DNA from: Hypanus sabinus
Lineage: Eukaryota
DNA: 64,000 nucleotides
NCBI RefSeq assembly: GCF_030144855.1
Contig: NC_082723.1
Coordinates: 35,526,001-35,590,000 of the forward strand
Direction of reading: 5' to 3'
Shown here: one piece after another, positions 12,101 through 43,089 of the stretch
Numbering within the stretch: position 1 is the first letter of the stretch
Layout of the letters: every line of letters starts with the position of its first letter
The notes under the pieces: model-generated
What the model saw: only the letters and a program-made list of their open reading frames with translations
Told to the model about the DNA's origin: nothing
Database searches by the model: none
Program-made: the position numbers and the translations under genes

Positions 12101-14000
12101 GTCCTTTTTTGCCATAATGAGTTGCTTACCTAAAATCAAGGGCATCTCCCTGTGACATTTTTTTAAAAAATGTTTAGAACATTGCATTTAAGTGATTGTT
12201 TCTGATTTTTGTTGTAAAAGGCAGCATTTTTTTTGGTATTATAGTGAATGAGAATTTATACTGGACTGTTGTAACCTCCTCTGACTAAAGATGATTGGAT
12301 AATGGAGTGCCATCTAGCCACACCGAAGGCAGTCTCTGTCCATTTAGGATAATAATGAATCATCAAGGCCCTATTTAATTTCTATGGTACATCAAAGCAA
12401 TTAACACAATATTGATAAACATAGCAAAGATTTTCTATGCCACTTCAAGATGCTGCAGCAACAATTAAAGCAATTGATTAAAACACATGTTGGCTCCAAT
12501 TAAATGCACTCATAATAAATACAGTGCTTTCTATGGACAAAATACACTATTTGGATTGGGAAGTGTTGGGTAGGTAACACTTTGAGATGCAAGTAATAAA
12601 TCCAAATCAAACTTGGGACATTAAACTTTTTTGATCCTGTAACTTTCTAGAATCTTCACCTCTTTGAAGCTGGATTACTATGATCAACAGTATGGTTATG
12701 ATGCATTTCCTTTCCATGTAACAAGTAGTCTATAGATCTGTTACTGTGCACAGCAAAATTTCATAATTGAATATCTTACAAATAATGAGTAAAATGTGAG
12801 TACAACATGTGAACATTTGCTTCATACTAAAGAAATATTTTGTCACTTTTAGACTAATTTGTGCAACTAGAAGTGGTAGGTTGTGTGCTGCTGTGAGGGA
12901 GATGTTTTGAGATATTGTTTCATTAATAAAGAATAAAAGTAATTGGAAGCAGGTTTTTAAAAAAACAGTTAAAAGGGGATTCCATTGTAAACCAATAGGC
13001 TAATTGTTGTAAAATGCCTCAGTACCAGGCATTTTGTTTTCAAAGGAAGAAGTGAGGGAAGAATTGAAATTCACTGTATGCTTCATAAACCACTGTTGAT
13101 CTGTGTTCTGGAAGCGTGTTAGTTATTTAAAAGCATAGAACAGGTTTACTAATTACAAAATCAACGGCAGATGTTTTATTTCAAAAGCTGGTTATTGAGT
13201 GCACTGCGTTACATTGGCCATTTAATTCATTTGAGTTCTGCTTGTAACAGTTGTCTCAAGGTTCAGTAGTACATATGAGAGAAATGACGTGCTTTATGGA
13301 TTTTAAAACTAATGAGCAACATTAAAATTGGTCTGTTTTCAAACTTAGTTTGTACTTAACTTTTTTAATTGAATGATTAAATGCCATAACACAAACCCAA
13401 CAAGTTTTCCAAAAGTGTCATTGATGTACCTGTACCTGTTGGGGTAGAACATTAAAATGATAAGATAAATTTATCAACTCTGTTCAACCAGCTGTCTTTG
13501 GGGCAAATGATGTGTGGCTATCTGGCACTCCTTGTCATAAGTGATGGTGTATATTTCAGAATGGGATTTGAAGCTATGCATTGGGAGTCCAGGCCCTTCA
13601 ATAGATGAATTTAACATTTTCTGAAATGACCTAACTCTCAACTAAAGTTGAATGATGACAAAAGAGTTCTATGATTTTGCTTAAAAAGGTGTAACAGAAT
13701 GTATTCCAAATGATATATTTAGACACTTATTTTTGTGATTCAATGGAGGTGGGTGTACAGGTTTCTTAAATGCCCAGAGGATGTGGAATTTATAGAAATG
13801 TTTATCAGCTGGAATATTGTATAACATTTAGATATGTTTAGAATGCACAATGAACTGTAATTGGTTAAAAGATATTTGTATTAAGGTTATTTGTTTCATA
13901 TTTTAAAGTGTAACTATAGGACAGTATCATGTAATACTGTGTTTCTGGGAAATGATATTGGGTACCCGTATTAACAATAAAAGCTGTTATTTTGTGTTTA
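6166..14000 (+). other. EEIG1: Probable long 3'UTR of EEIG1; true end uncertain
   Basis: AT/U-rich and almost free of young TEs compared with the flanks; several AATAAA hexamers, with a distal one at ~13976 followed by a GT/T-rich tract. Confidence 0.45.
9248..10620 (-). mobile_element. Old L2-clade LINE fragment, antisense
   Basis: Begins GATGGGGATCTGGATGATGCAGGCAAGTCCAGCGTTTATT..CCCA, the reverse complement of an L2-type tail (GGG..AATAAA.GCTGG.CTTGC); related starts at ~43168 and ~38055. Confidence 0.6.
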
Positions 14001-15007
14001 GCATTAAGAATTTTTACTTTAGACAATCAGTTGCCAGGGTTTTATCTCGTCTCCCAGGAGAATACTCTGAGTAATGTTCAAAATGTGTTTTATCAAGGAA
14101 TCATTGAGTAGAACAGGCTGAATCTCCCAAAGGGACTTGTCTATTTGCTTTTGTTTCTAGTTTTACAACTTCCTTGTCTCTTGTTATGATTGTGTGGATG
14201 TGATCAGCAGGCCACCTGTTGTAATTTTAGCCAGCAGTTTGCTCTACACTGGGAAATTGAGCAGATTTCCTGATTTCTTGAGACTGAAGGATAGTTTTCA
14301 GCTCAAGATTGCCTGTCATTAATAAATTTAGCACGAGTAGATTTCTTACAGTATATTGCAGCTAAAGCATTCTTGGTTGTACAGTTCAACAAACAATCAG
14401 GCATTTTCACAAATTTCAGAAACTATAAGCATTTTAGAATATTTCAACATACAAACCCATTCATTATGTCATACCTGCACTGGCTCTTTGGTAAAGCTAT
14501 CTGACTTCCCTTCCAATGCTCTTCATTGTCTAGTAAAATTTCAAAGGATTGCAAAATTATTTCTCGGATTAAAATTCTCTAACTTCTATGACATGAATTT
14601 ATCTCTGGACTTGTAATTTAGGTTTTGGATTACTGGTTGAGTAACAGTCATTCTAATCTCGTATTCTTACAAAACCTTGGATGAATTTATTTTATTGAGT
14701 TATGAATTTATAGATGTCAGTTCTAAAGGGATTTCTGGAAGCCAACAAAGATGTATCCTCCAAGCAGAAATTCTGGGAATAATTGATCTACCATCTTCAG
14801 TTATTTGTCTTTCAATCTCTGGCAAAATGTTCCCAGAGCATCCTTTAGTTTGTCTTTCAAAGCTGGAAAGCAAATATTTTTTTTAAATCTGTAAATTATT
14901 TTGCATATGTGTATTCAATATGAACAGCGAAATTAAACCTGAATGTTCTGCGGCAAATACTTGTGTAGATGTCCATAGGAGGTCATAGCTCAGGCTAATC
15001 TGCTTTA

Positions 15008-15144
15008 TTATTTCATTTGTGATGTCTGTCTTGTCCACTTCCTTTTTTTCTCCACACATGCAAAGCACAAACTTAACCAGATATTTTCCTTGGGAATGAT
15101 TTCAATGCCATTTGGAGTTCTGACTGGATGGAATGCACACAACC
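15008..15144 (-). CDS. MRH/M6PR-like membrane protein, coding exon 3 (cytoplasmic tail): (G)LCAFHPVRTPNGIEIIPKENIWLSLCFACVEKKRKWTRQTSQMK*
   Basis: ATTTTCAG acceptor; 137 nt, phase 1, ending in TAA; the G.E.IP...W..L motif is like CD-MPR/ATG27 tails; absent from the ORF track in this frame. Confidence 0.8.
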
Positions 15145-16103
15145 CTGAAAATAATCAGAGACTTTAGTTTCCTCACTTCCACTTGTCATTAACAAATACT
15201 TATTAGATGGAAGAACTGATTTAGCAAATTAAGGATTCACGTGCACCAAGAAAACTGTTTTTAGGGTGTCCTGGTAGTAATAAGTACATCAGCTTTTAAA
15301 ATTAACCAGAATGAGTGAATGTATACTCTAAAGCAAAGGGGTGATGTGCTTGTAGTGCTTTACAACCTTAGATTTTTGAAATATAGCCAATAGGAAAATG
15401 GCAGCCAAAATTTTGCTGCTTACAGGACCTTGGTCTTTAGTGTGATAAGTGATCTGTTTTAGTGAAGAGGGATAAATGTTCTCGTGCTTATTTAAACCAG
15501 GTGAAATGTTGAATATTCATCACTTCCTCAGTACAACATTGAGCTGCACCTTTGACATCACCTCCCCAAATCTGAGTGTGTAACCCTCTGACTCTGAAGC
15601 ATAAATGTGGCCACATAACAACAAAGGTAATATCCTGCTTGCTTCTCCACATTGGTGTGCAGTCTCCTCATTTAAAATGTTTAGATCTGTCATTTTTCAC
15701 CTTGTATCTCCCTCAATTCTAGGAACATCACTGTATGGTTAGTTTCTAAGTGTGTATCAACCCCTTCATCCCTTCCCTCTGTTGCCCTATTCTTAACACA
15801 CTGTCTCTTCTACCATCTGATCTCCATCATCCCCTTCAGTCTTCAAGCATAGAAGCAAACTAGGGGATAACACGAATCACACCTAATCATGTTGATAATC
15901 AGGATCTCATACTTTGCAGTTCCTTAAAGTTTCTGCATCCCTATAGTCCTTCAGCCCTTTCTTGAAAACCACTATTTTAAACTAAGCTTTGGTCAGGCCC
16001 ACTGCAATGCTTCCCTTCAGTTGTTCCCTTATAATTGTGATGATTGCCATGAATCACATTTTTTGTGTTAAAGATGCTGCTTGAGTGTATGCTGTTAACC
16101 CAC

Positions 16104-16319
16104 CAAACAAGAAGTAGGCTGTGATAGTTATGCTGAACACCACTAAGATGATGGTTCGTGGACCCACATCCTGAGGTTCGCAACTGTTGGGGCAAGCACA
16201 AGGACTATCGACAGAAATCCATAGCACATAAGGACTCTTTGGATCTTGAGAAGCAATCACTGAGTGATGGGAACTACAGTTGTATCGAACTACTGTCTGC
16301 AGTAAACTGCTGAGTGAAG
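16104..16319 (-). CDS. MRH/M6PR-like membrane protein, coding exon 2: end of lumenal domain (QTVVRYNC...VDSPCACPNSC) plus TM helix (IILVVFSITITAYFLFG)
   Basis: CTCTTTTCTGTTGCAG acceptor and G|GTGGGT donor; 216 nt, phase 1-1, open frame. Confidence 0.85.
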
Positions 16320-16499
16320 CTGCAACAGAAAAGAGGATTAAGATTGTATCTCTGGAAGTGAGGGGTATAAAAAAACAACTTCTTAGTACATTTTCATATA
16401 GTAAAACAATCCAAAGCACTTTAAATATCAACTAATTTGACATGAAGCTCAAAAACAAATACTAAATGCTGATTCCCATAACTGTGGAATGAACAGATC

Positions 16500-17070
16500 A
16501 GAAGCAGCATTCATTAGCACTGTTTGTGGATGAGGAAGAGGGTCAAAGTAATTGATTGTTTTTCCAACCTGGATGTGATGAATTTATGGTGCTAAGTAAT
16601 ATGAATACCATGATTACTATATATTAATAACTTGAATATATTCACATGAAGATCTCAAAGTTTGCCCACATCACCAAATTAGCAGTTGTGGTAAACTGTG
16701 AAGAATATTAAGAGGCTGCAAAAGGACCTAGTTAGGCTGTCAGAAAGGGAATACAAGTGGAAAATGAAATTTTTAAAGCATTAAAATGTGAAGTGATTCA
16801 TCTTGACCGAAGAACAAAGCACCAATCTGGACAAAATTGTCTGGTTCAAGGGTGTGAAGAACCTGAGTGGTGACATCACAAAAGGTCTTGCGGGGGGGGG
16901 GGGGGATGCATTTTGATTTGGAGCTTAATGCTTGTAAAGATGTTTCAACAGTCCATCAGGGAAAATTAACAGGTTTACAAGATCCCAGCAGGAAAATTGA
17001 ATTAATGGACTTAAGAGACACCTAGCATAGACCTAACGAGCAAAGAAGCTCTTGCTGTGTTATGACATTG
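16500..17070 (+). mobile_element. Highly decayed CR1 fragments
   Basis: AAGTTTGC..., GGCTGCAAAAGGACCTAG.TAGGCT and AAATGTGAAGTGATTCAT resemble the CR1 RT region. Confidence 0.5.
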
Positions 17071-17124
17071 TGCGACATTCAGACTGGTGACCAAAGGATT
17101 GACAAAGAGGTAAAGTATGAAGAA

Positions 17125-17430
17125 CATATTACATGGAGCAGCGTGGCACAAGACAGGTTCTTCAGCCCATGATCTTGAGCTGAACTAATGAAATTAATCC
17201 CTGCACATTGGCCATATCCCTCCCTTTTCTGCATATTCAGGTGTCCGAGGGTTTCATAAAAGTTCCTGTTACATTAGCTTCTACCACCACCCCTAGCAGT
17301 GCATTTCAGGCTCCGGCTACTATATAAATACTTGCTTTGTACATCTCGTTTGAACTTAACCCTCTTGCCTTAAATGCATGTCCTCAAACACTTGTCTTGG
17401 GGAAAAAGATACTGGTTGCCTCATGCCTCA
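17125..17430 (-). mobile_element. CR1 3' fragment
   Basis: TTCAGCCCA...CTACCACCACCCCTAGCAGTGCATTTCAGG...GGGGAAAAAGATACTGG, reverse complement of a CR1 3' end. Confidence 0.65.
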
Positions 17431-17469
17431 CGTAAAAATATAAAGGTTTTAAAAAGAGCGTTAGTGCTT

Positions 17470-20441
17470 TTTGGCTCTTCGCTGGCGAGTTGCAATCAGC
17501 ATGGGGCCAATAAAAAGGAGGTATAAGTGGAGTGGCTGTTGTTGGAGTGGGACAGTGTAAGAGTTAAGCCAAAGCTCGACCGTAGGCTTGGGCAAGCACA
17601 GGCAGATGTTCTAAGTAAGTTTCTAATAAGTTTTTGCTTTCTGTTGGTACATAGCTTGTGCACAAAGAAAGGGTTTGGAGGTAGCGGTATGTTTTATGTA
17701 GGAACTCTGGGAGGTATAGTATGATTAGGAATAGTCAGTATGGCTTTGCCAAGGGCAGGTCATGCCTTATGAGCCTGAGTGAATTGTTTGAGGATGTGTC
17801 CAAACACATTGATGAAGGAAGCCGAGAGGTAATGATGCAGCTATATAGGACCCTGGTCAGACCCCACTTGGAGTATTGTGCTCAGTTCTGGTCATTTCAC
17901 TACAGGAAGGATGTGGAAGCCATTGAAAAGCTGCAGAGGAGGTTGCCTGGATTGGGGAGCATGCCTTATTAGAATAGGTTGAGTGAACTCGGCCTTTTCT
18001 CCTTGGAGCGACGGAGGATGAGAGGTGACCTGATAGAGCTGTATAAGATAATGAGAGGTATTGATCGTGTGGATAGTCAGAGGCTTTTTCCCAGGGCTGA
18101 AATAGTTGCCACAGGAGGACACAGGTTTAAGGTGCTGGGGAGTAGGTACAGAGGAGATGTCAGGGGTAAGTTTTTTTTACTCAAAGTGGTGAGTGCGTGG
18201 AATGGGCTGCTGGCAACGGTGGTGGAGGTGGATATGCTAGGGTCTTTTAAGAGACTTTTGGATAGGTGCATGGAGCTTAGAAAAGTAGAGGGCTTTGTGG
18301 AAGCCTAGTAATTTCTAAGGTAGGGACAAGTTCGGCACAGCTTTGTGGGCCGAAGGGCCTGTATTGTGCTGTAGGTTTTCTATGTTTCTATCTAGTCTCC
18401 CTGATAACTAGATCTGCACAAAGTGCATCAAGCTGCAGCATCTTAGGGATCATTATAGAATTGGAGTTGCACCTCAATTCTTTGGCTCAAACAGAAAAAT
18501 GAACAGGCGATGGGAGCTACAGTGAAGTAGTCAGCCTAAGTTGCAGAAGGCAGGTACCTGGTTGATTGTCAGGAGAGGGAAAGGAGAAAAACTGCCAGTA
18601 CAGAGCATCTCTGTGGATGTTCCCCTCTAAGTACAACACTTTGGCTACTGTTGGGGGGGGGGGGGACAACCTACTGTGGGAAGCCAAAATGACTGGGCCT
18701 CTAGCTCTGTGGCTCAGAAGGGAAGGGGGAGAAGAGTGCAGTAGTGATGATTATTATAGGAGCAGAAAGCAGATTTGTGAGAGAGGCGCCTGGATGGTAT
18801 GTTGCCTTGCAGGTGCGAGGGTCAAGGATGACTTCGATAAAGCTGGAAGTCTTGGTACATATTGGTACCAATTACATAGGTAGGAAAAGGGAGGAGGTCC
18901 TAAAGAGAGACCATATGGAGTTGGCAGAAAGCTGAAAAAAAAGCAGAATCTCCAGGGTAGTAATTGCTGCCTGTGATCATAATATGACTGAATTCGCACT
19001 GCAGCTTGAGAGGGAGAAGCATAAGTCACAGGTATCAGTATCACAATGGAATAAAGGGATTACAGAGGCACAAGAAAGGAGCTTGCCCAGGTGGTTTAGA
19101 GGAGAATACTGACTAAGTAAAAATGGCTAAACTTCCTGGGAATAGTTCATAAGGTGCAGGATAGATACAGTATGTCCCACAGAAGTTCTCAAATGGCAGG
19201 GGTAGGCAGTCATGGCTGATGAGGGAGGTTAAGGATTGCTTAAAAGCCAAGGAAAGGGCATATAAGGTAGCAAAAGTGAATGGGAAGTTGGATGATTGGG
19301 AAGCTTTTAAAATCCAACAAAAGGCAATTTAAAAAGCTATAAGAAGGGAAAAGATGAAATATGAGGGCAAACCTGCGAATAATATAAAGTGGGATACTAA
19401 AAGTTTTTTTCCAGTTATATAAAGAGTAAAAGGGAGGTGTGAGTTGATAATGGACCACTGGAAAATGATGCTGGTGAGGTAGTAATGGGGGACAAAAAAA
19501 TGGCAGATGAATCTAATGAGTACTTTGCATCAGTCTTCACTGTGGAAGACACTAGCAATGTGCCAGAGATCCGTGACTATCGGAGCAGGAGTGAGTGTCA
19601 TTGCTATTACAAAGGGAAAAAGTGCTAAACAAACTGGTCTTAAGGTGGCTGAGTTAGATGGACTACATCCCAGAGGCCTGAGATGGGTTGCTAAAGAGCT
19701 GATGGATGCATTGGTCATGAACTTTCAAGAATCACTTGATTCTAGCATGGTCCCAGAAGATTAAAATATTGCAGATATTTTACCACTCTTCAAGAAAGGA
19801 GGAAGGCAAAAGAAAATTATAGGTCAGTTAGCCATACATCAGTGGTTGGGGAAAGTGTTGGAGTCTATTATTAAGGATGAAGTTTTGGGGTACTTGGAGA
19901 CTGATAAAATAAGTCAAAGTCGGTATGGTTTCTGAAAAGGGAAATCTTGCCTGACAAATCTGTTAGTTCTTGAGGAAGTAACCAGCAGGGTGAACAAAGG
20001 AGAGGCCGTGGATGTCATTTACTTGATTTTCACATGGCATTTGATAAGGTGCCACATGAGGCTACTTAAAAGAAAATCCTATGGCGTTACAGGAAAGATA
20101 TTGGCATGAATAGAGAAATGGCTGATGGGCAGGAGGCAGTGAGTGGGAATAAAGGGGGCCTTTCCTGATTGTCTGCCAGTGACTAGCGGAGTTCCTTGGA
20201 GGTCAGTATTGGAACCGCTACTTTTCACATTTTGATTCTGACCGGTGCTTTTCACATTGTTTGTCAGTGATTTGGATAATGGAATAGATAGCTTTGTGGC
20301 AAAGTTTGAGGGGTAGATAGTGCTGAGGAAGCAATGTGATTGCAGCAGGACTTAGACAAATTGGAAGAATAGGCAAAAGATGTGACAGATGGAACAGTGT
20401 TGGGAAATGTATAATAGTACATTTTGGTAAAAGGAACAATA
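17470..20441 (+). mobile_element. CR1 LINE: 5' region, ORF1 remnant and ORF2 remnant, interrupted by a nested CR1
   Basis: ORF1-like remnants (WMVCCLAGARVKD, EVLVHIGTN.IGRKREEVL); ORF2 DGLHPR.L...A.E..DAL...FQES and AAATCTTGCCTGACAAATCT. Confidence 0.85.
17717..18390 (+). mobile_element. Younger CR1 (same subfamily as 1-1157), 5'-truncated and internally deleted, nested in the ORF1 region of another CR1
   Basis: SQYGFAKGRSCL...HIDEG fused to SREVMMQLYRTLVRPHLEY; TTTCTATGTTTCTA tail; host sequence resumes TCTAGTCTCCCTGATAAC. Confidence 0.9.
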
Positions 20442-21168
20442 CACCTGCCTTGTTGTCATTTCCCTCGATCCCCTGACCGATCAGGAACCAACCTGCAGTC
20501 TGCGGCAGAGCATTCCACAGATTCACTACTCTGACTAAAAACATTCCATCTTGCCTCTGTTTTTAAAAAGTCGCCCTTCAGTTTTGAGGCTGTGCCCTCT
20601 AGTTCTGGATACCCCCGCCATAGAGTGGATGTGGAGAGGATGCTTCTTATCTATCTAGTAGTCCTTTCAACATTTGATAAGTTTCAATGAGATCTTCCCC
20701 CCACCGCCCCCGCCCCACACACACACATTCTTCTAAATTCCAGTGAGTACAGGCCCAACGCAGCAAACACTCTTCACATGTTAACCCCTTCATTCCTGGA
20801 ATCATCCTTGTGAACCTCCTCCAGACTCTCTCCAATGACAACATATCCTTTCTGAGATATGGGGCCCAAACTGTCAACAATACTCCATGCAGCCTGACTA
20901 GTGTCTTAAAAAGGCTCAGTATTATGTCCTTGCTTTTATATCCTATTCTGCTTGAAATAATGCCAACATTGCAATTGCTGCATTTATCACAATCTCAACT
21001 TGTAAATTAACCTTCTGGGAGTCTTGCACAAGGACTCCTGAGACCCTCTGCACCTCTGATGTTTGAACCTTCTTCCCACTTAGATAATTGTCCACACTAT
21101 TGTTCCTTTTACCAAAATGCGTTATCATATATTTCCCAACACTCTATTCCATCTGCCACTTCTCTGGC
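20442..21168 (-). mobile_element. CR1 ORF2 3' part, inverted relative to the adjoining + copy
   Basis: Minus-strand translations HFGKRNN, WAPYLRKDMLSLERV.RRFTRMIPGM and RVVNLWNALPQ. Confidence 0.88.
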
Positions 21169-21169
21169 A

Positions 21170-21755
21170 GCTGGTAAAGTTCCATCTGCCCCAGAACACA
21201 CTGATACAATTCTACACTTCCACCCTCACATCAGCCATTACTGTTTTGTTTGACGCAGCATTCTCTCACGATATTCAAAAACTACAGCTAACTAACAGGA
21301 CACCATTGGCTGCAGTCTGCCATCATTGCCAGACTTGTATATGTCTGGGATAAAGATGTAATCAGGAAAAATCATTGTGGGTACTACCCACCTAGCAAAT
21401 TGTCTTTTCCAAATGCCCCCTTCTGGAAAGCATTATAGAGTTACTAAAACAAAAACTTCATGCCATTTTAAAAATTTCTTCACCCAGGCAGCTGATCAGA
21501 TTAACCATTCTCATTACCCCCCACCCCCAACCTCAGTAACGGCACTGCACTATAAACACTTTAAACCATTTTTAATTGTTCTTTATATTGTAAATTCATG
21601 CTGTTTATGTAATTATGCACATTTTATCCCATAGCTGTACTTAGAACATTATTTTAATAAAATTATTTATTCTTTAATTGTTGAATGTCATGCCAACACA
21701 TCACAGCAAATTCCTAACACAGCTAAATGTTTATGGCAAATAAAGTTGATTTTTG
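21170..21755 (+). mobile_element. Rex1/Babar-type LINE 3' fragment
   Basis: LFQMPPSGKHYRV.K.KT..FKNFFTQA resembles the Rex1 C-terminus LPSGRRYR...RLKNSFFPQA; AATAAAG tail. Confidence 0.65.
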
Positions 21756-21879
21756 CTCCTTGATTTCATCCAGCAGAACAAGAGGAGGCCCATCAGCTAA
21801 AGCCTTTCAGCTTTAAGTTTTGTTTTTAGCTCAAGTTTGAGCTCTTCACATAAATTTTTTTTTAATGCAGAAATCTTAC

Positions 21880-22324
21880 CTGAGTAGGTGACGGTGAGTA
21901 TTTTTGACATGTTATCATAATTGAATTCATTCAGCTTATGGCTTCCATAGTTAAGAAAACCAACATTCCCTTTTCCTTGAGCTTGGTTCCTGATAATCAG
22001 GCATGCAGCCACATCCGAACAGTCAGAAGCAAACAAGAAAGGTTTACTGAATGGCTGGCAAGGACTAAATGAGTAGAGAATATTAAACTCAGAATTTTTG
22101 GTAGTGAGTGGTTTATCTCTCGCCAGAAATCCATTGTCATCTCCCACGGCTGCTAGATTGATCACTCCTGATCCATCCTTCATTATACATTTGCAGGGAT
22201 TCAGTTTAATGCATTCTGATCTTTGGGAGAAAGAGCAAGAAGGCCATAATATCAGCAAGCACAACCAGCTGTAAGCCCCACTCCCAGCACTCTGCATCTT
22301 GGAGAGGAATTTCTCACACTGCAT
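21880..22324 (-). CDS. MRH/M6PR-like membrane protein, coding exon 1: signal peptide plus most of the Cys-rich lumenal domain
   Basis: 445-nt open frame: WLCLLILWPSCSFS signal-like segment, C....PCKC, G.INL, YSFSPCQPF, DC..VAAC, NYG, LTVTYS; CAG|GTAAGA donor; the second ATG (22297, aagATG) has the better Kozak context; TTTTAAGCATAG immediately upstream could be an acceptor. Confidence 0.88.
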
Positions 22325-27889: not shown

Positions 27890-28180
27890 CATTGGACTTT
27901 ACGGGCTGTAGCAGCTTCTGTCGCTGGACATTGTCCTTCACCCGACGGGCTGCGCCATCTTCCATCACTCGGCTGTTCCTCGCCGGACTGCGCATGCGCC
28001 CGGTTATACCTCCGTCACGCCGGCGTTCTGCGTGATGCACGTGACCGCGGCTGGCCGTGACCCCGGAAGTTGACGTTCCGGCGCCCGGAGTGGTGACGAT
28101 GGTGAGTGAGGTGGCGACGGGCTGAGGGCGCTTTCACCGGGGTAGTTCCTTAGGCCAGGAGGTGGCTTGCGGCCTGCCCT
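27890..28180. promoter_or_regulatory. CpG-island promoter of DPM2, probably bidirectional
   Basis: Only CpG-dense unique segment; YY1-like AAGATGGCG (minus, 27953-27961), NRF1 TGCGCATGCGC (27989-27999), E-box CACGTGAC (28038-28045), ETS CCGGAAGT (28063-28070), TGACGT (28071-28076), inverted ETS TTCCGG (28076-28081). Confidence 0.85.
28099..28101 (+). CDS. DPM2: DPM2 coding exon 1 (ATG only)
   Basis: GACGATG|GTGAGT inside the CpG island; an ATG-only first coding exon agrees with the human DPM2 structure as I recall it; phase 0 fits exon 2. Confidence 0.88.
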
Positions 28181-42049: not shown

Positions 42050-43089
42050 CAGTCAGCCCTCCTTATCTGTGAATTCAACCAACCATGAATCGTGAAAACC
42101 CAGAAGTGCTCTTCTAGCNNNNNNNNNNNNNNNNNNNNNNNNNNNNNNNNNNNNNNNNNNNNNNNNNNNNNNNNNNNNNNNNNNNNNNNNNNNNNNNNNN
42201 NNNNNNNNNNNNNNNNNNNNNNNNNNNNNNNNNNNNNNNNNNNNNNNNNNNNNNNNNNNNNNNNNNNNNNNNNNNNNAGTCAGTAGGTGCAGGAGTAGGC
42301 CATTCGGTCCTTCTAGCCAGCACCGCCATTCACTGTGATCATGGCTGATCATACATAATCAGTATCCTGTTCCTGCCCTCTCCCTATATCCCTTGACCCC
42401 GCTATCTATAAGAGCGGTATCATGGATCGGGATTGAAAAAAATCTGGAGTTCTCTTACTAAGTAAGTCAGAACAGGTATATCCAGTATTTTTTAGCGTTA
42501 GTTAGTCAAACGTTTGCATTCGTATAAAATATATATTTTACCTTTCTGTGCATATAAAACACTTAAGAACGTATGTTCCAGCGCTGGGCTCAGGAAGATC
42601 CCGAGTTCGATCTAGTGACAGATGGCTATCGAGTGTACTCTCCACCATACTGGATTGGTGTGGAGGATCAAAAACCCAAAACCCAATAATTAAACCACTG
42701 AGTTGCTTAGTAAAAATTGTAGCTTTCATCGGGGCACAACTTTTCTCACTTTATCCTTTAAAATTGTTCCGATGGTTGACCGACGTAGCCTAACGTTTTT
42801 CCAATGACCGATGGCGTTTCACCTCTTTCCAGTCGCTTTATTATTTCCACTTTATTTTCAATCGTTGTCATGATTATTTTTGTAAACAGAAACACTACGG
42901 ATTCAGAGCTCTACCGTCGGGTCCTAATGTCCACCGCACAGAGACAGGTTACATAGGGTCTGGGGTTCCGCTGGGTCCTAAGGTCCACCGCATTGAGACA
43001 GGTTGAATTAAGGGGTTTGAGCATCCGTAAATTTTGGTATCCGTGAGGGGTCCCGGAACCAATCCCTCGCGGATAAGGAGGGCCGACTG
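42050..43089. mobile_element. Tigger/MER2-like non-autonomous DNA transposon spanning the gap, with a CR1 3' end inserted (~42278-42413, minus)
   Basis: TA|CAGTCAGCCCTCCTTATC ... GATAAGGAGGGCCGACTG TIRs; internal direct repeat GGGTCCTAA.GTCCACCGCA..GAGACAGGTT x2. Confidence 0.82.
42119..42277. other. Assembly gap (159 N)
   Basis: Run of N. Confidence 1.

Follow-up and report, generated by a model that had tools for sequence, protein, structure and literature searches.

The window, a 64,000-nucleotide (nt) stretch of the genome of the Atlantic stingray, Hypanus sabinus (contig NC_082723.1, positions 35,526,001 to 35,590,000), carries on its minus strand a three-exon gene between DPM2 and a gene with an NT-C2 domain. 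This locus, LOC132407476, is very probably a genuine, expressed, single-copy gene for an MRH-type type I membrane glycoprotein, a member of an unnamed gnathostome family for which cycling through endomembranes is proposed. Its exons at 22324-21880, 16319-16104 and 15144-15008 can be read directly from the window sequence, with AG acceptors, GT donors and phase-1 junctions between exons 1 and 2 and between exons 2 and 3. Joined, they form a 798-nt coding sequence (CDS) with zero internal stops that ends in a TAA at 15010-15008 and encodes 265 amino acids (aa), the structure that an earlier note on this DNA had proposed. Translation from the second ATG (22297) would give 256 aa, and this shorter form is the likelier product judging from alignments, because orthologues start where the second methionine falls; the same note had preferred this start. 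The features of the gene, with the start of its upstream neighbor, are as follows, where TM stands for transmembrane:

21880..22324, minus strand: exon 1, coding, 445 nt, with ATGs at 22324 and 22297 (the second being the conserved start); it holds the signal peptide and the MRH strands as far as the LTVTYS motif.
21879-21878, minus strand: GT donor of exon 1, from the sequence.
16320..21879, minus strand: intron 1, 5560 nt, GT...AG, with dispersed repeats at about 17.6-21.2 kb.
16104..16319, minus strand: exon 2, coding, 216 nt, phase 1 at both ends and skipped in an in-frame isoform; it holds the final MRH strands, the SPCACP motif and the bulk of the TM helix.
15145..16103, minus strand: intron 2, 959 nt, GT...AG; the contig gap reads CT..AC in plus-strand orientation, equal to GT..AG in the direction of the gene.
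15008..15144, minus strand: coding part of exon 3, which completes the TM helix and encodes the cytoplasmic tail, in which a conserved G-x-x-I-x-P-x-x-x-W is followed by Cys247 and Cys250; TAA stop at 15010-15008.
15009-15004, minus strand: AATAAA, overlapping the stop codon.
16180..22219, minus strand: genomic span of the lumenal MRH domain (about aa 36-195), interrupted by intron 1 and placed from the predicted model.
28099..28122, plus strand: start of the DPM2 CDS in the assembly gene table; the short open reading frame, a Met and then a stop, is consistent with a short first exon.

The encoded protein begins with a hydrophobic N-terminus, has ten cysteines in its ectodomain and two sequons (NMS at N138 and NCS at N162), and continues through one hydrophobic span at about residues 204-225 into a tail of about 40 aa. 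The earlier description of a Cys-rich ectodomain with two sequons and one TM span agrees with this, its tail having been put at about 44 aa. By these features the product is predicted to be a glycosylated type I membrane protein, and modeling suggests four parts within its 256-265 aa: a signal peptide, one lumenal MRH barrel, one TM helix and a short basic tail.

A HMMER search with the exon-1 translation returned a 100% identical 236-aa protein of Hypanus sabinus, XP_059850047.1 (P0001), which RefSeq labels 'uncharacterized protein LOC132407476'. This model runs past the exon-2 donor into intron 2, stops at 16054 and misses exon 3, and its C-terminal 16 residues, from the 16054-16103 region, are unconserved. 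The exon-3 tail is 60-78% conserved in skate and sharks (Amblyraja, Heptranchias, Scyliorhinus) and is recognizable in bony fish, frogs, marsupials and amphioxus, and the three-exon protein aligns with complete orthologues over its full length, tail included. Since the tail can be recognized as far away as amphioxus and the exon 2-3 junction is present in RNA, the three-exon model is better than the RefSeq model, whose C-terminus is incorrect and which it should replace. Pfam and the other tools were run on P0001 or on near orthologues rather than on the corrected 265-aa protein. The gene is already in databases, but only as unnamed LOC entries. The earlier characterization of it as unnamed and uncharacterized therefore needs dividing: no name has been given, yet dozens of 'uncharacterized protein LOC...' models of the family stand in RefSeq and UniProt, where every relative that carries a name is called 'uncharacterized' or 'hypothetical'. 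Literature searches found no paper on the family.

RNA evidence comes from four data sets of related species, 95-97% identical to exon-1 words, and contigs from such species cross both of the predicted splice junctions, 21880/16319 and 16104/15144. An X2 contig of 329 nt continues from 22139-21880 into 16319-16251, which is the exon 1-2 junction, and the exon 2-3 junction is crossed by a 153-nt X1 contig, which skips 959 nt between 16103/4 and 15143/4; alignments of X1 and X2 contigs break exactly at the exon-1 donor, 21879/21880. Compared with the stingray CDS, the RNA contigs carry 5 substitutions (2 synonymous, 3 not) and one in-frame 9-nt deletion. A third X1 contig (201 nt) joins exon 1 straight to exon 3 and represents an in-frame mRNA that skips exon 2. 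In species A RNA this form, aligned at 15116-15149 and 21879-22051, is covered about as deeply as the full form, and the catshark annotation includes it as isoform X3 (XP_038637387.1, 185 aa); its product would be without the final barrel strands and the TM helix. In intron 1, repeats at 17600-21200 are matched at 85-95% by thousands of RNA contigs from the four related species, with depths up to tens of thousands and peaks at 17800-18400 and 20600-20800; no RNA contigs from these species aligned to the unique parts of the intron.

AlphaFold2, given a 43-sequence alignment, predicts a 12-strand lumenal domain and a TM helix (pLDDT 85.9, pTM 0.75), with the strands lying at residues 38-187, mostly above pLDDT 90. 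In a Foldseek search of the PDB, the best 48 matches to this model are all MRH proteins. Comparison of model residues 33-199 with MRH domains in VIA-align gave Z 12.9 to CI-MPR domains 8, 11-14 and 5 (root-mean-square deviation, rmsd, 2.5-2.8 Å over 127-138 residues), Z 11.4 to ELAPOR1, 9.6-10.8 to CD-MPR and 6-8 to OS-9, GNPTG, XTP3-B, Yos9 and GIIbeta, whereas the first non-MRH chain reached only Z 3.8. Among AFDB Swiss-Prot models the closest are fungal Atg27, Mrl1, CD-MPR, CI-MPR and ELAPOR2; among AFDB clusters, unnamed fish and amphioxus proteins come best, followed by entries named 'Autophagy-related protein 27' and 'MRH domain-containing protein'. The type I protein with an MRH, M6P-receptor or ATG27-type fold that the earlier note had envisaged is borne out by these matches. 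The lumenal domain is accordingly modeled as an MRH beta-barrel, putatively held by conserved cysteines: C38, C44, C46, C89, C102, C108 and C191 are invariant in the family and C163 is nearly so.

The MRH repeats of CI-MPR (Pfam CIMR) provide both the best structural match (Z 12.9, rmsd 2.5-2.6 Å) and the only significant match among PDB sequences, in which the family profile finds domain 5 at E 1.3e-4. The N-terminal hairpin and five Cys columns align there, with C89, C102, C108, C163 and C191 matching cysteines of domain 5. Unlike CI-MPR, which strings together 15 tandem repeats, the family's domain stands alone and is followed by a TM helix and tail of its own. CD-MPR has the same layout, with a single MRH barrel of similar size (model residues 37-192 against CD-MPR 16-154, Z 9.6-10.8), one TM helix and a tail, and it shares a weak Pfam match over the TM helix and juxtamembrane region. 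The family differs from it in its N-terminal C-x-C-x-M-x-DGSG-x-I-N-L hairpin, which is of the CI-MPR-repeat or invertebrate type, in its Pfam score below the gathering level, in its tail without an acidic dileucine and in its locus beside DPM2.

At the Pfam gathering cut-offs of 27 bits for ATG27 (PF09451) and 25.4 bits for Man-6-P_recep (PF02157), orthologues stand at the first threshold and below the second. Several full-length orthologues score 27.1-32.3 bits with ATG27 (Amblyraja 31.3, Heptranchias 27.3, Anguilla 31.3, Mantella 32.3), and further orthologues reach 18-21 bits or give no match, as does the stingray RefSeq model. With Man-6-P_recep, orthologues score 11.6-20.5 bits, under the cut-off, and P0001 is unmatched in the Pfam search, which upholds the earlier statement that the gene is not the M6PR orthologue. 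The sub-threshold Man-6-P_recep match (E 3e-4 to 1e-2) runs over profile positions 130-214, from the final strands through the TM helix into the juxtamembrane tail. The exon translations searched separately gave no Pfam or PDB sequence match, so that a signal appears in sequence searches only with full-length orthologues and profiles. A language-model atlas search gave CIMR/ATG27 leads beneath its own reliability level, which served as leads only.

The residues that bind sugar in MPR domains can be followed through the family alignment, in which columns were read with the alignment to CI-MPR domain 5 as anchor; hhalign comparison of alignments A1 and A2, inflated by common rows, gave column correspondence only. 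In the domain 5 alignment the mannose-contact columns are construct residues Q67, R110, E132 and Y137, which we take to be Gln644, Arg687, Glu709 and Tyr714 of CI-MPR, an assignment that fits the printed sequence. At the Gln site (the residue after Cys108, corresponding to Gln66 of CD-MPR and Gln644 of CI-MPR domain 5), all 29 of the 29 vertebrate rows have Leu or Val. In the vertebrate family, Leu, Met or Phe stands at the Tyr site, ten residues ahead of Cys191, and the Glu site is variable. The Arg site, eight residues before Cys163, is Leu in the stingray and Arg in skate and bilby, is offset by one in sharks and frogs, and is absent in teleosts. The stingray thus reads Leu, Leu, Pro, Leu at the Gln, Arg, Glu and Tyr sites, and equivalents of CD-MPR Gln66, Arg111, Glu133 and Tyr143 are absent or not conserved in the family. 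CI-MPR domains 8 and 11 likewise miss the sugar-binding quartet. Unlike the vertebrate proteins, P0038 of amphioxus retains Gln, Arg, Glu and Tyr and passes both Pfam cut-offs, as do several relatives in molluscs, brachiopods and hemichordates. As far as alignment can tell, the vertebrate family therefore appears to combine an MRH fold with loss of the canonical lectin site and would be 'sugar-blind', which makes the lectin-type 'sorting receptor' of the earlier note doubtful.

The exon-1 HMMER search yielded 69 relatives at E <= 1e-3, and a second search found 88. Orthologues occur in rays, skates and sharks, in bichirs, gar, bowfin and many teleosts, and in frogs and one caecilian. Six marsupials, namely bilby, wombat, monito del monte, Tasmanian devil, antechinus and tammar, have intact annotated orthologues, and in the bilby the position next to DPM2 and the NT-C2 gene is conserved. 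The earlier suggestion that the gene was lost in mammals therefore fails. In word-based searches with 50% clustering, no eutherian, monotreme or sauropsid member was seen, which is absence of evidence only; the gene is missing, at most, from those three groups. In a maximum-likelihood (ML) tree, which took in no vertebrate M6PR sequences, the vertebrate proteins form one clade with support 100/100, and their branching matches the species tree, as single-copy orthologues should. The tree has long branches at the family stem (1.8) and the marsupial stem (1.5). In the marsupial proteins (P0020, P0179-P0182) the otherwise invariant DGSG is changed to GSHQ, ESHQ or GSRQ and the C-terminus is different; together with the very long stem, these sequence changes point to accelerated or relaxed evolution. 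Amphioxus P0038, used as query in sequence and PDB searches, brought up no vertebrate M6PR among its matches. The relatives also include multi-repeat proteins in which the N-terminal half of the domain recurs 3-5 times, namely P0008 (697 aa, amphioxus), P0009 (919 aa, Logan/JGI contigs) and P0033 (934 aa, pearl oyster), of which P0009 has no Pfam match whatever.

The flanking genes carry this history further back. DPM2 (PF07297) is the divergent neighbor, about 5.8 kb upstream of the stingray CDS start, and the NT-C2 gene (PF10358, 407 aa), whose sequence is consistent with EEIG1/FAM102A, is convergent and lies about 10 kb downstream; these domains confirm the position between DPM2 and a FAM102A-type gene that had been read from the window. 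The bilby gene has the same divergent DPM2 and convergent NT-C2 gene in an identical arrangement. Within 10 kb of the seahorse orthologue there is no DPM2 or NT-C2 gene. In Branchiostoma lanceolatum, P0042 (CAH1272455.1) has neighbors and orientations as in the stingray, so the gene order proposed earlier for a synteny check recurs in stingray, bilby and amphioxus. The P0042 CDS starts 117 bp from the DPM2 CDS start (L001 9884 and 10001), and the genome project calls the protein 'M6PR', its UniProt name being 'Autophagy-related protein 27'. It is placed as sister to the vertebrate clade in the ML tree (99/98). Stingray, seahorse and amphioxus also have two phase-1 introns at the same positions, one after the '..V.Y..' strand and one within the end of the TM helix, and the exon between them measures 216 nt in stingray, 219 nt in seahorse and 225 nt in amphioxus. 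As a positional orthologue, P0042 further shares the DGSG hairpin, the Cys pattern and a G-x-x-I-P-x-x-x-W tail with the vertebrate proteins, and like them it is without Gln and Tyr at the sugar site; unlike them, it keeps Arg and passes both Pfam thresholds.

Because P0042 stands head-to-head with DPM2 and tail-to-tail with the FAM102A-type NT-C2 gene, the locus is at least of chordate age. The hemichordate, brachiopod and other amphioxus relatives are not beside DPM2 and often form tandem arrays, and paralogues of amphioxus and lophotrochozoans such as P0038, with their full Gln/Arg/Glu/Tyr set, sit in tandem clusters elsewhere. From the synteny, tree position and shared introns of P0042, set against these other locations, the family, or at least its locus, therefore split from sugar-binding CD-MPR-like genes before vertebrates. 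DPM2 is a regulator of dolichol-phosphate-mannose synthesis. A head-to-head linkage kept over 500 million years suggests shared regulation, and a functional tie to dolichol-phosphate-mannose metabolism would be speculation.

By analogy with CD-MPR, the protein may cycle between Golgi and endosomes, steered by its juxtamembrane tail and carrying a ligand other than mannose 6-phosphate (M6P), a tentative reading on which the balance tips slightly toward doubt. The family tail has G-x-x-I-x-P-x-x-x-W followed by one to three Cys (about 21 and 25-28 residues past the membrane). In CD-MPR the tail has the aromatic pair Phe18-Trp19, and the family's Trp and subsequent Cys take positions similar to this pair and to Cys30/Cys34; because of this resemblance, a palmitoylated cycling protein would be expected. 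Cys30 and Cys34 of CD-MPR are palmitoylated, and palmitoylation of Cys34 is needed for trafficking (PMC2199859). In the proposed mechanism, the protein would shuttle between Golgi and endosomes in the fashion of CD-MPR, the conserved juxtamembrane tail, with its Trp and then Cys placed much like Cys30/Cys34, would be the steering element, and the tail Cys would be palmitoylated. Instead of M6P, the ligand of the MRH barrel would be a protein or an unusual glycan, as with MRH domains in CI-MPR, ELAPOR and Atg27 that are not lectins. A bolder extension, and a rather unlikely one, makes the protein a third chordate-wide MPR-like cycling receptor that has been locked to DPM2 for more than 500 million years, traded M6P recognition for new cargo and was later discarded by eutherians and perhaps sauropsids.

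Several observations weigh against this overall picture. The RNA support for the stingray gene comes from related species, and sampled exon-1 words are absent from RNA runs labeled with the likely source species. The grouping of P0042 with the vertebrates unites two long branches, synteny being its independent support. The mapping of binding residues rests on sequence and profile alignments, and a non-canonical sugar site may persist. Cycling is inferred by analogy for every family member. The C-terminal sorting signal of the CD-MPR family is an acidic-cluster dileucine, DXXLL. The family tail is without this signal; chondrichthyan tails have no DXXLL and end in a basic stretch. The second tail Cys is not universal either, being Arg in species A and absent in many teleosts.

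If the barrel still bound sugar, the gene would encode a working P-type lectin, a third receptor for mannose 6-phosphate (or mannose) that sorts lysosomal enzymes. An MRH fold that scores Z 10-13 against both MPRs, a type I topology and size like those of CD-MPR, a tail like its juxtamembrane region, and invertebrate relatives that exceed the Man-6-P_recep threshold and retain Gln/Arg/Glu/Tyr all fit such a role. It is nevertheless improbable, given that every vertebrate member has Leu or Val at the Gln site and Leu, Met or Phe at the Tyr site, that Arg and Glu are not conserved, that the tail lacks the acidic dileucine signal and that the Man-6-P_recep scores stay under threshold. A comparably slim prospect, and the chief rival to cycling, drawn by analogy, is that the protein is the animal counterpart of fungal Atg27 and would act as a passenger or organizer of ATG9 vesicles through its tail, with a largely dispensable MRH barrel. 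In Atg27 itself, the C-terminal region binds Atg9 and autophagy does not require the MRH domain (bioRxiv 10.1101/2025.11.06.685569). Atg27 proteins (PF09451) share the architecture and are the top AFDB Swiss-Prot matches (E 2e-7), and orthologues reach the ATG27 gathering score (27.1-32.3 against 27 bits). These scores, however, barely reach the threshold, and the same relatives are matched by both the ATG27 and the Man-6-P_recep model, which overlap there; identity to Atg27 is 9-16%, TM-scores to Atg27 models are below 0.5, and conservation of the tail extends to CD-MPR-like proteins of amphioxus but not visibly to Atg27. Eutherian ATG9 trafficking, moreover, appears to work without this gene. 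An Atg27 role ranks below Golgi/endosome cycling, since resemblance to Atg27 in Pfam scores and structure is marginal and conservation of the tail points to CD-MPR-like proteins.

A chance open reading frame, a decaying pseudogene or an annotation artifact in repeat-rich DNA would account for the repeat-rich introns, the differing RefSeq model and the exon pieces that alone match nothing in Pfam or PDB. The chance of this is vanishingly small, and the reading is rejected: two related species have spliced RNA contigs, the 88 and 69 homologues keep invariant Cys and motifs from sharks to marsupials, the predicted fold is confident, and synteny and intron phases are kept to amphioxus.

With a real gene encoding a predicted MRH protein that may cycle as CD-MPR does, the vertebrate MRH set (M6PR, IGF2R, GNPTG, OS9, ERLEC1, PRKCSH, ELAPOR1/2), so far treated as closed, would gain an unnamed, deeply conserved single-domain member. 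That the family is missing among the eutherian hits seen may explain why it has gone unstudied. If the bolder reading, a third MPR-like receptor with new cargo, is true, fish, amphibians and marsupials would have a lineage-specific sorting route invisible to the cell biology of mouse and human. Researchers working with zebrafish, Xenopus or marsupial cells gain a testable gene. The locus raises the questions of what role a CD-MPR-shaped protein has without the sugar-binding residues and why the DPM2 linkage has been kept since the chordate ancestor.

The transcript may extend beyond the coding exons at both ends. An AG at 22326-22325 immediately precedes the first ATG (22324) and may be the acceptor for a non-coding upstream exon; this AG and the 12-nt overhang of an X3 RNA contig aligned at 22173-22324 together suggest such a 5' exon, which possibly lies in the DPM2 promoter region at 27890-28122. 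The GC content of the window peaks at 28-30 kb, in that promoter region. At the other end, a 1773-nt RNA contig of species A covers about 13240-15014 at roughly 110x depth, against about 4x for the CDS contigs, and terminates at 15014, six bases within the stop-codon region. It could be a 3'-biased long 3' untranslated region (UTR) of the stingray gene or the far end of the 3' UTR of the convergent NT-C2 gene. Minus-strand AATAAA signals lie at 15009, 14696, 14691 and 13180. Elsewhere in the window, a run of 159 N at 42119-42277 marks an assembly gap or mask.

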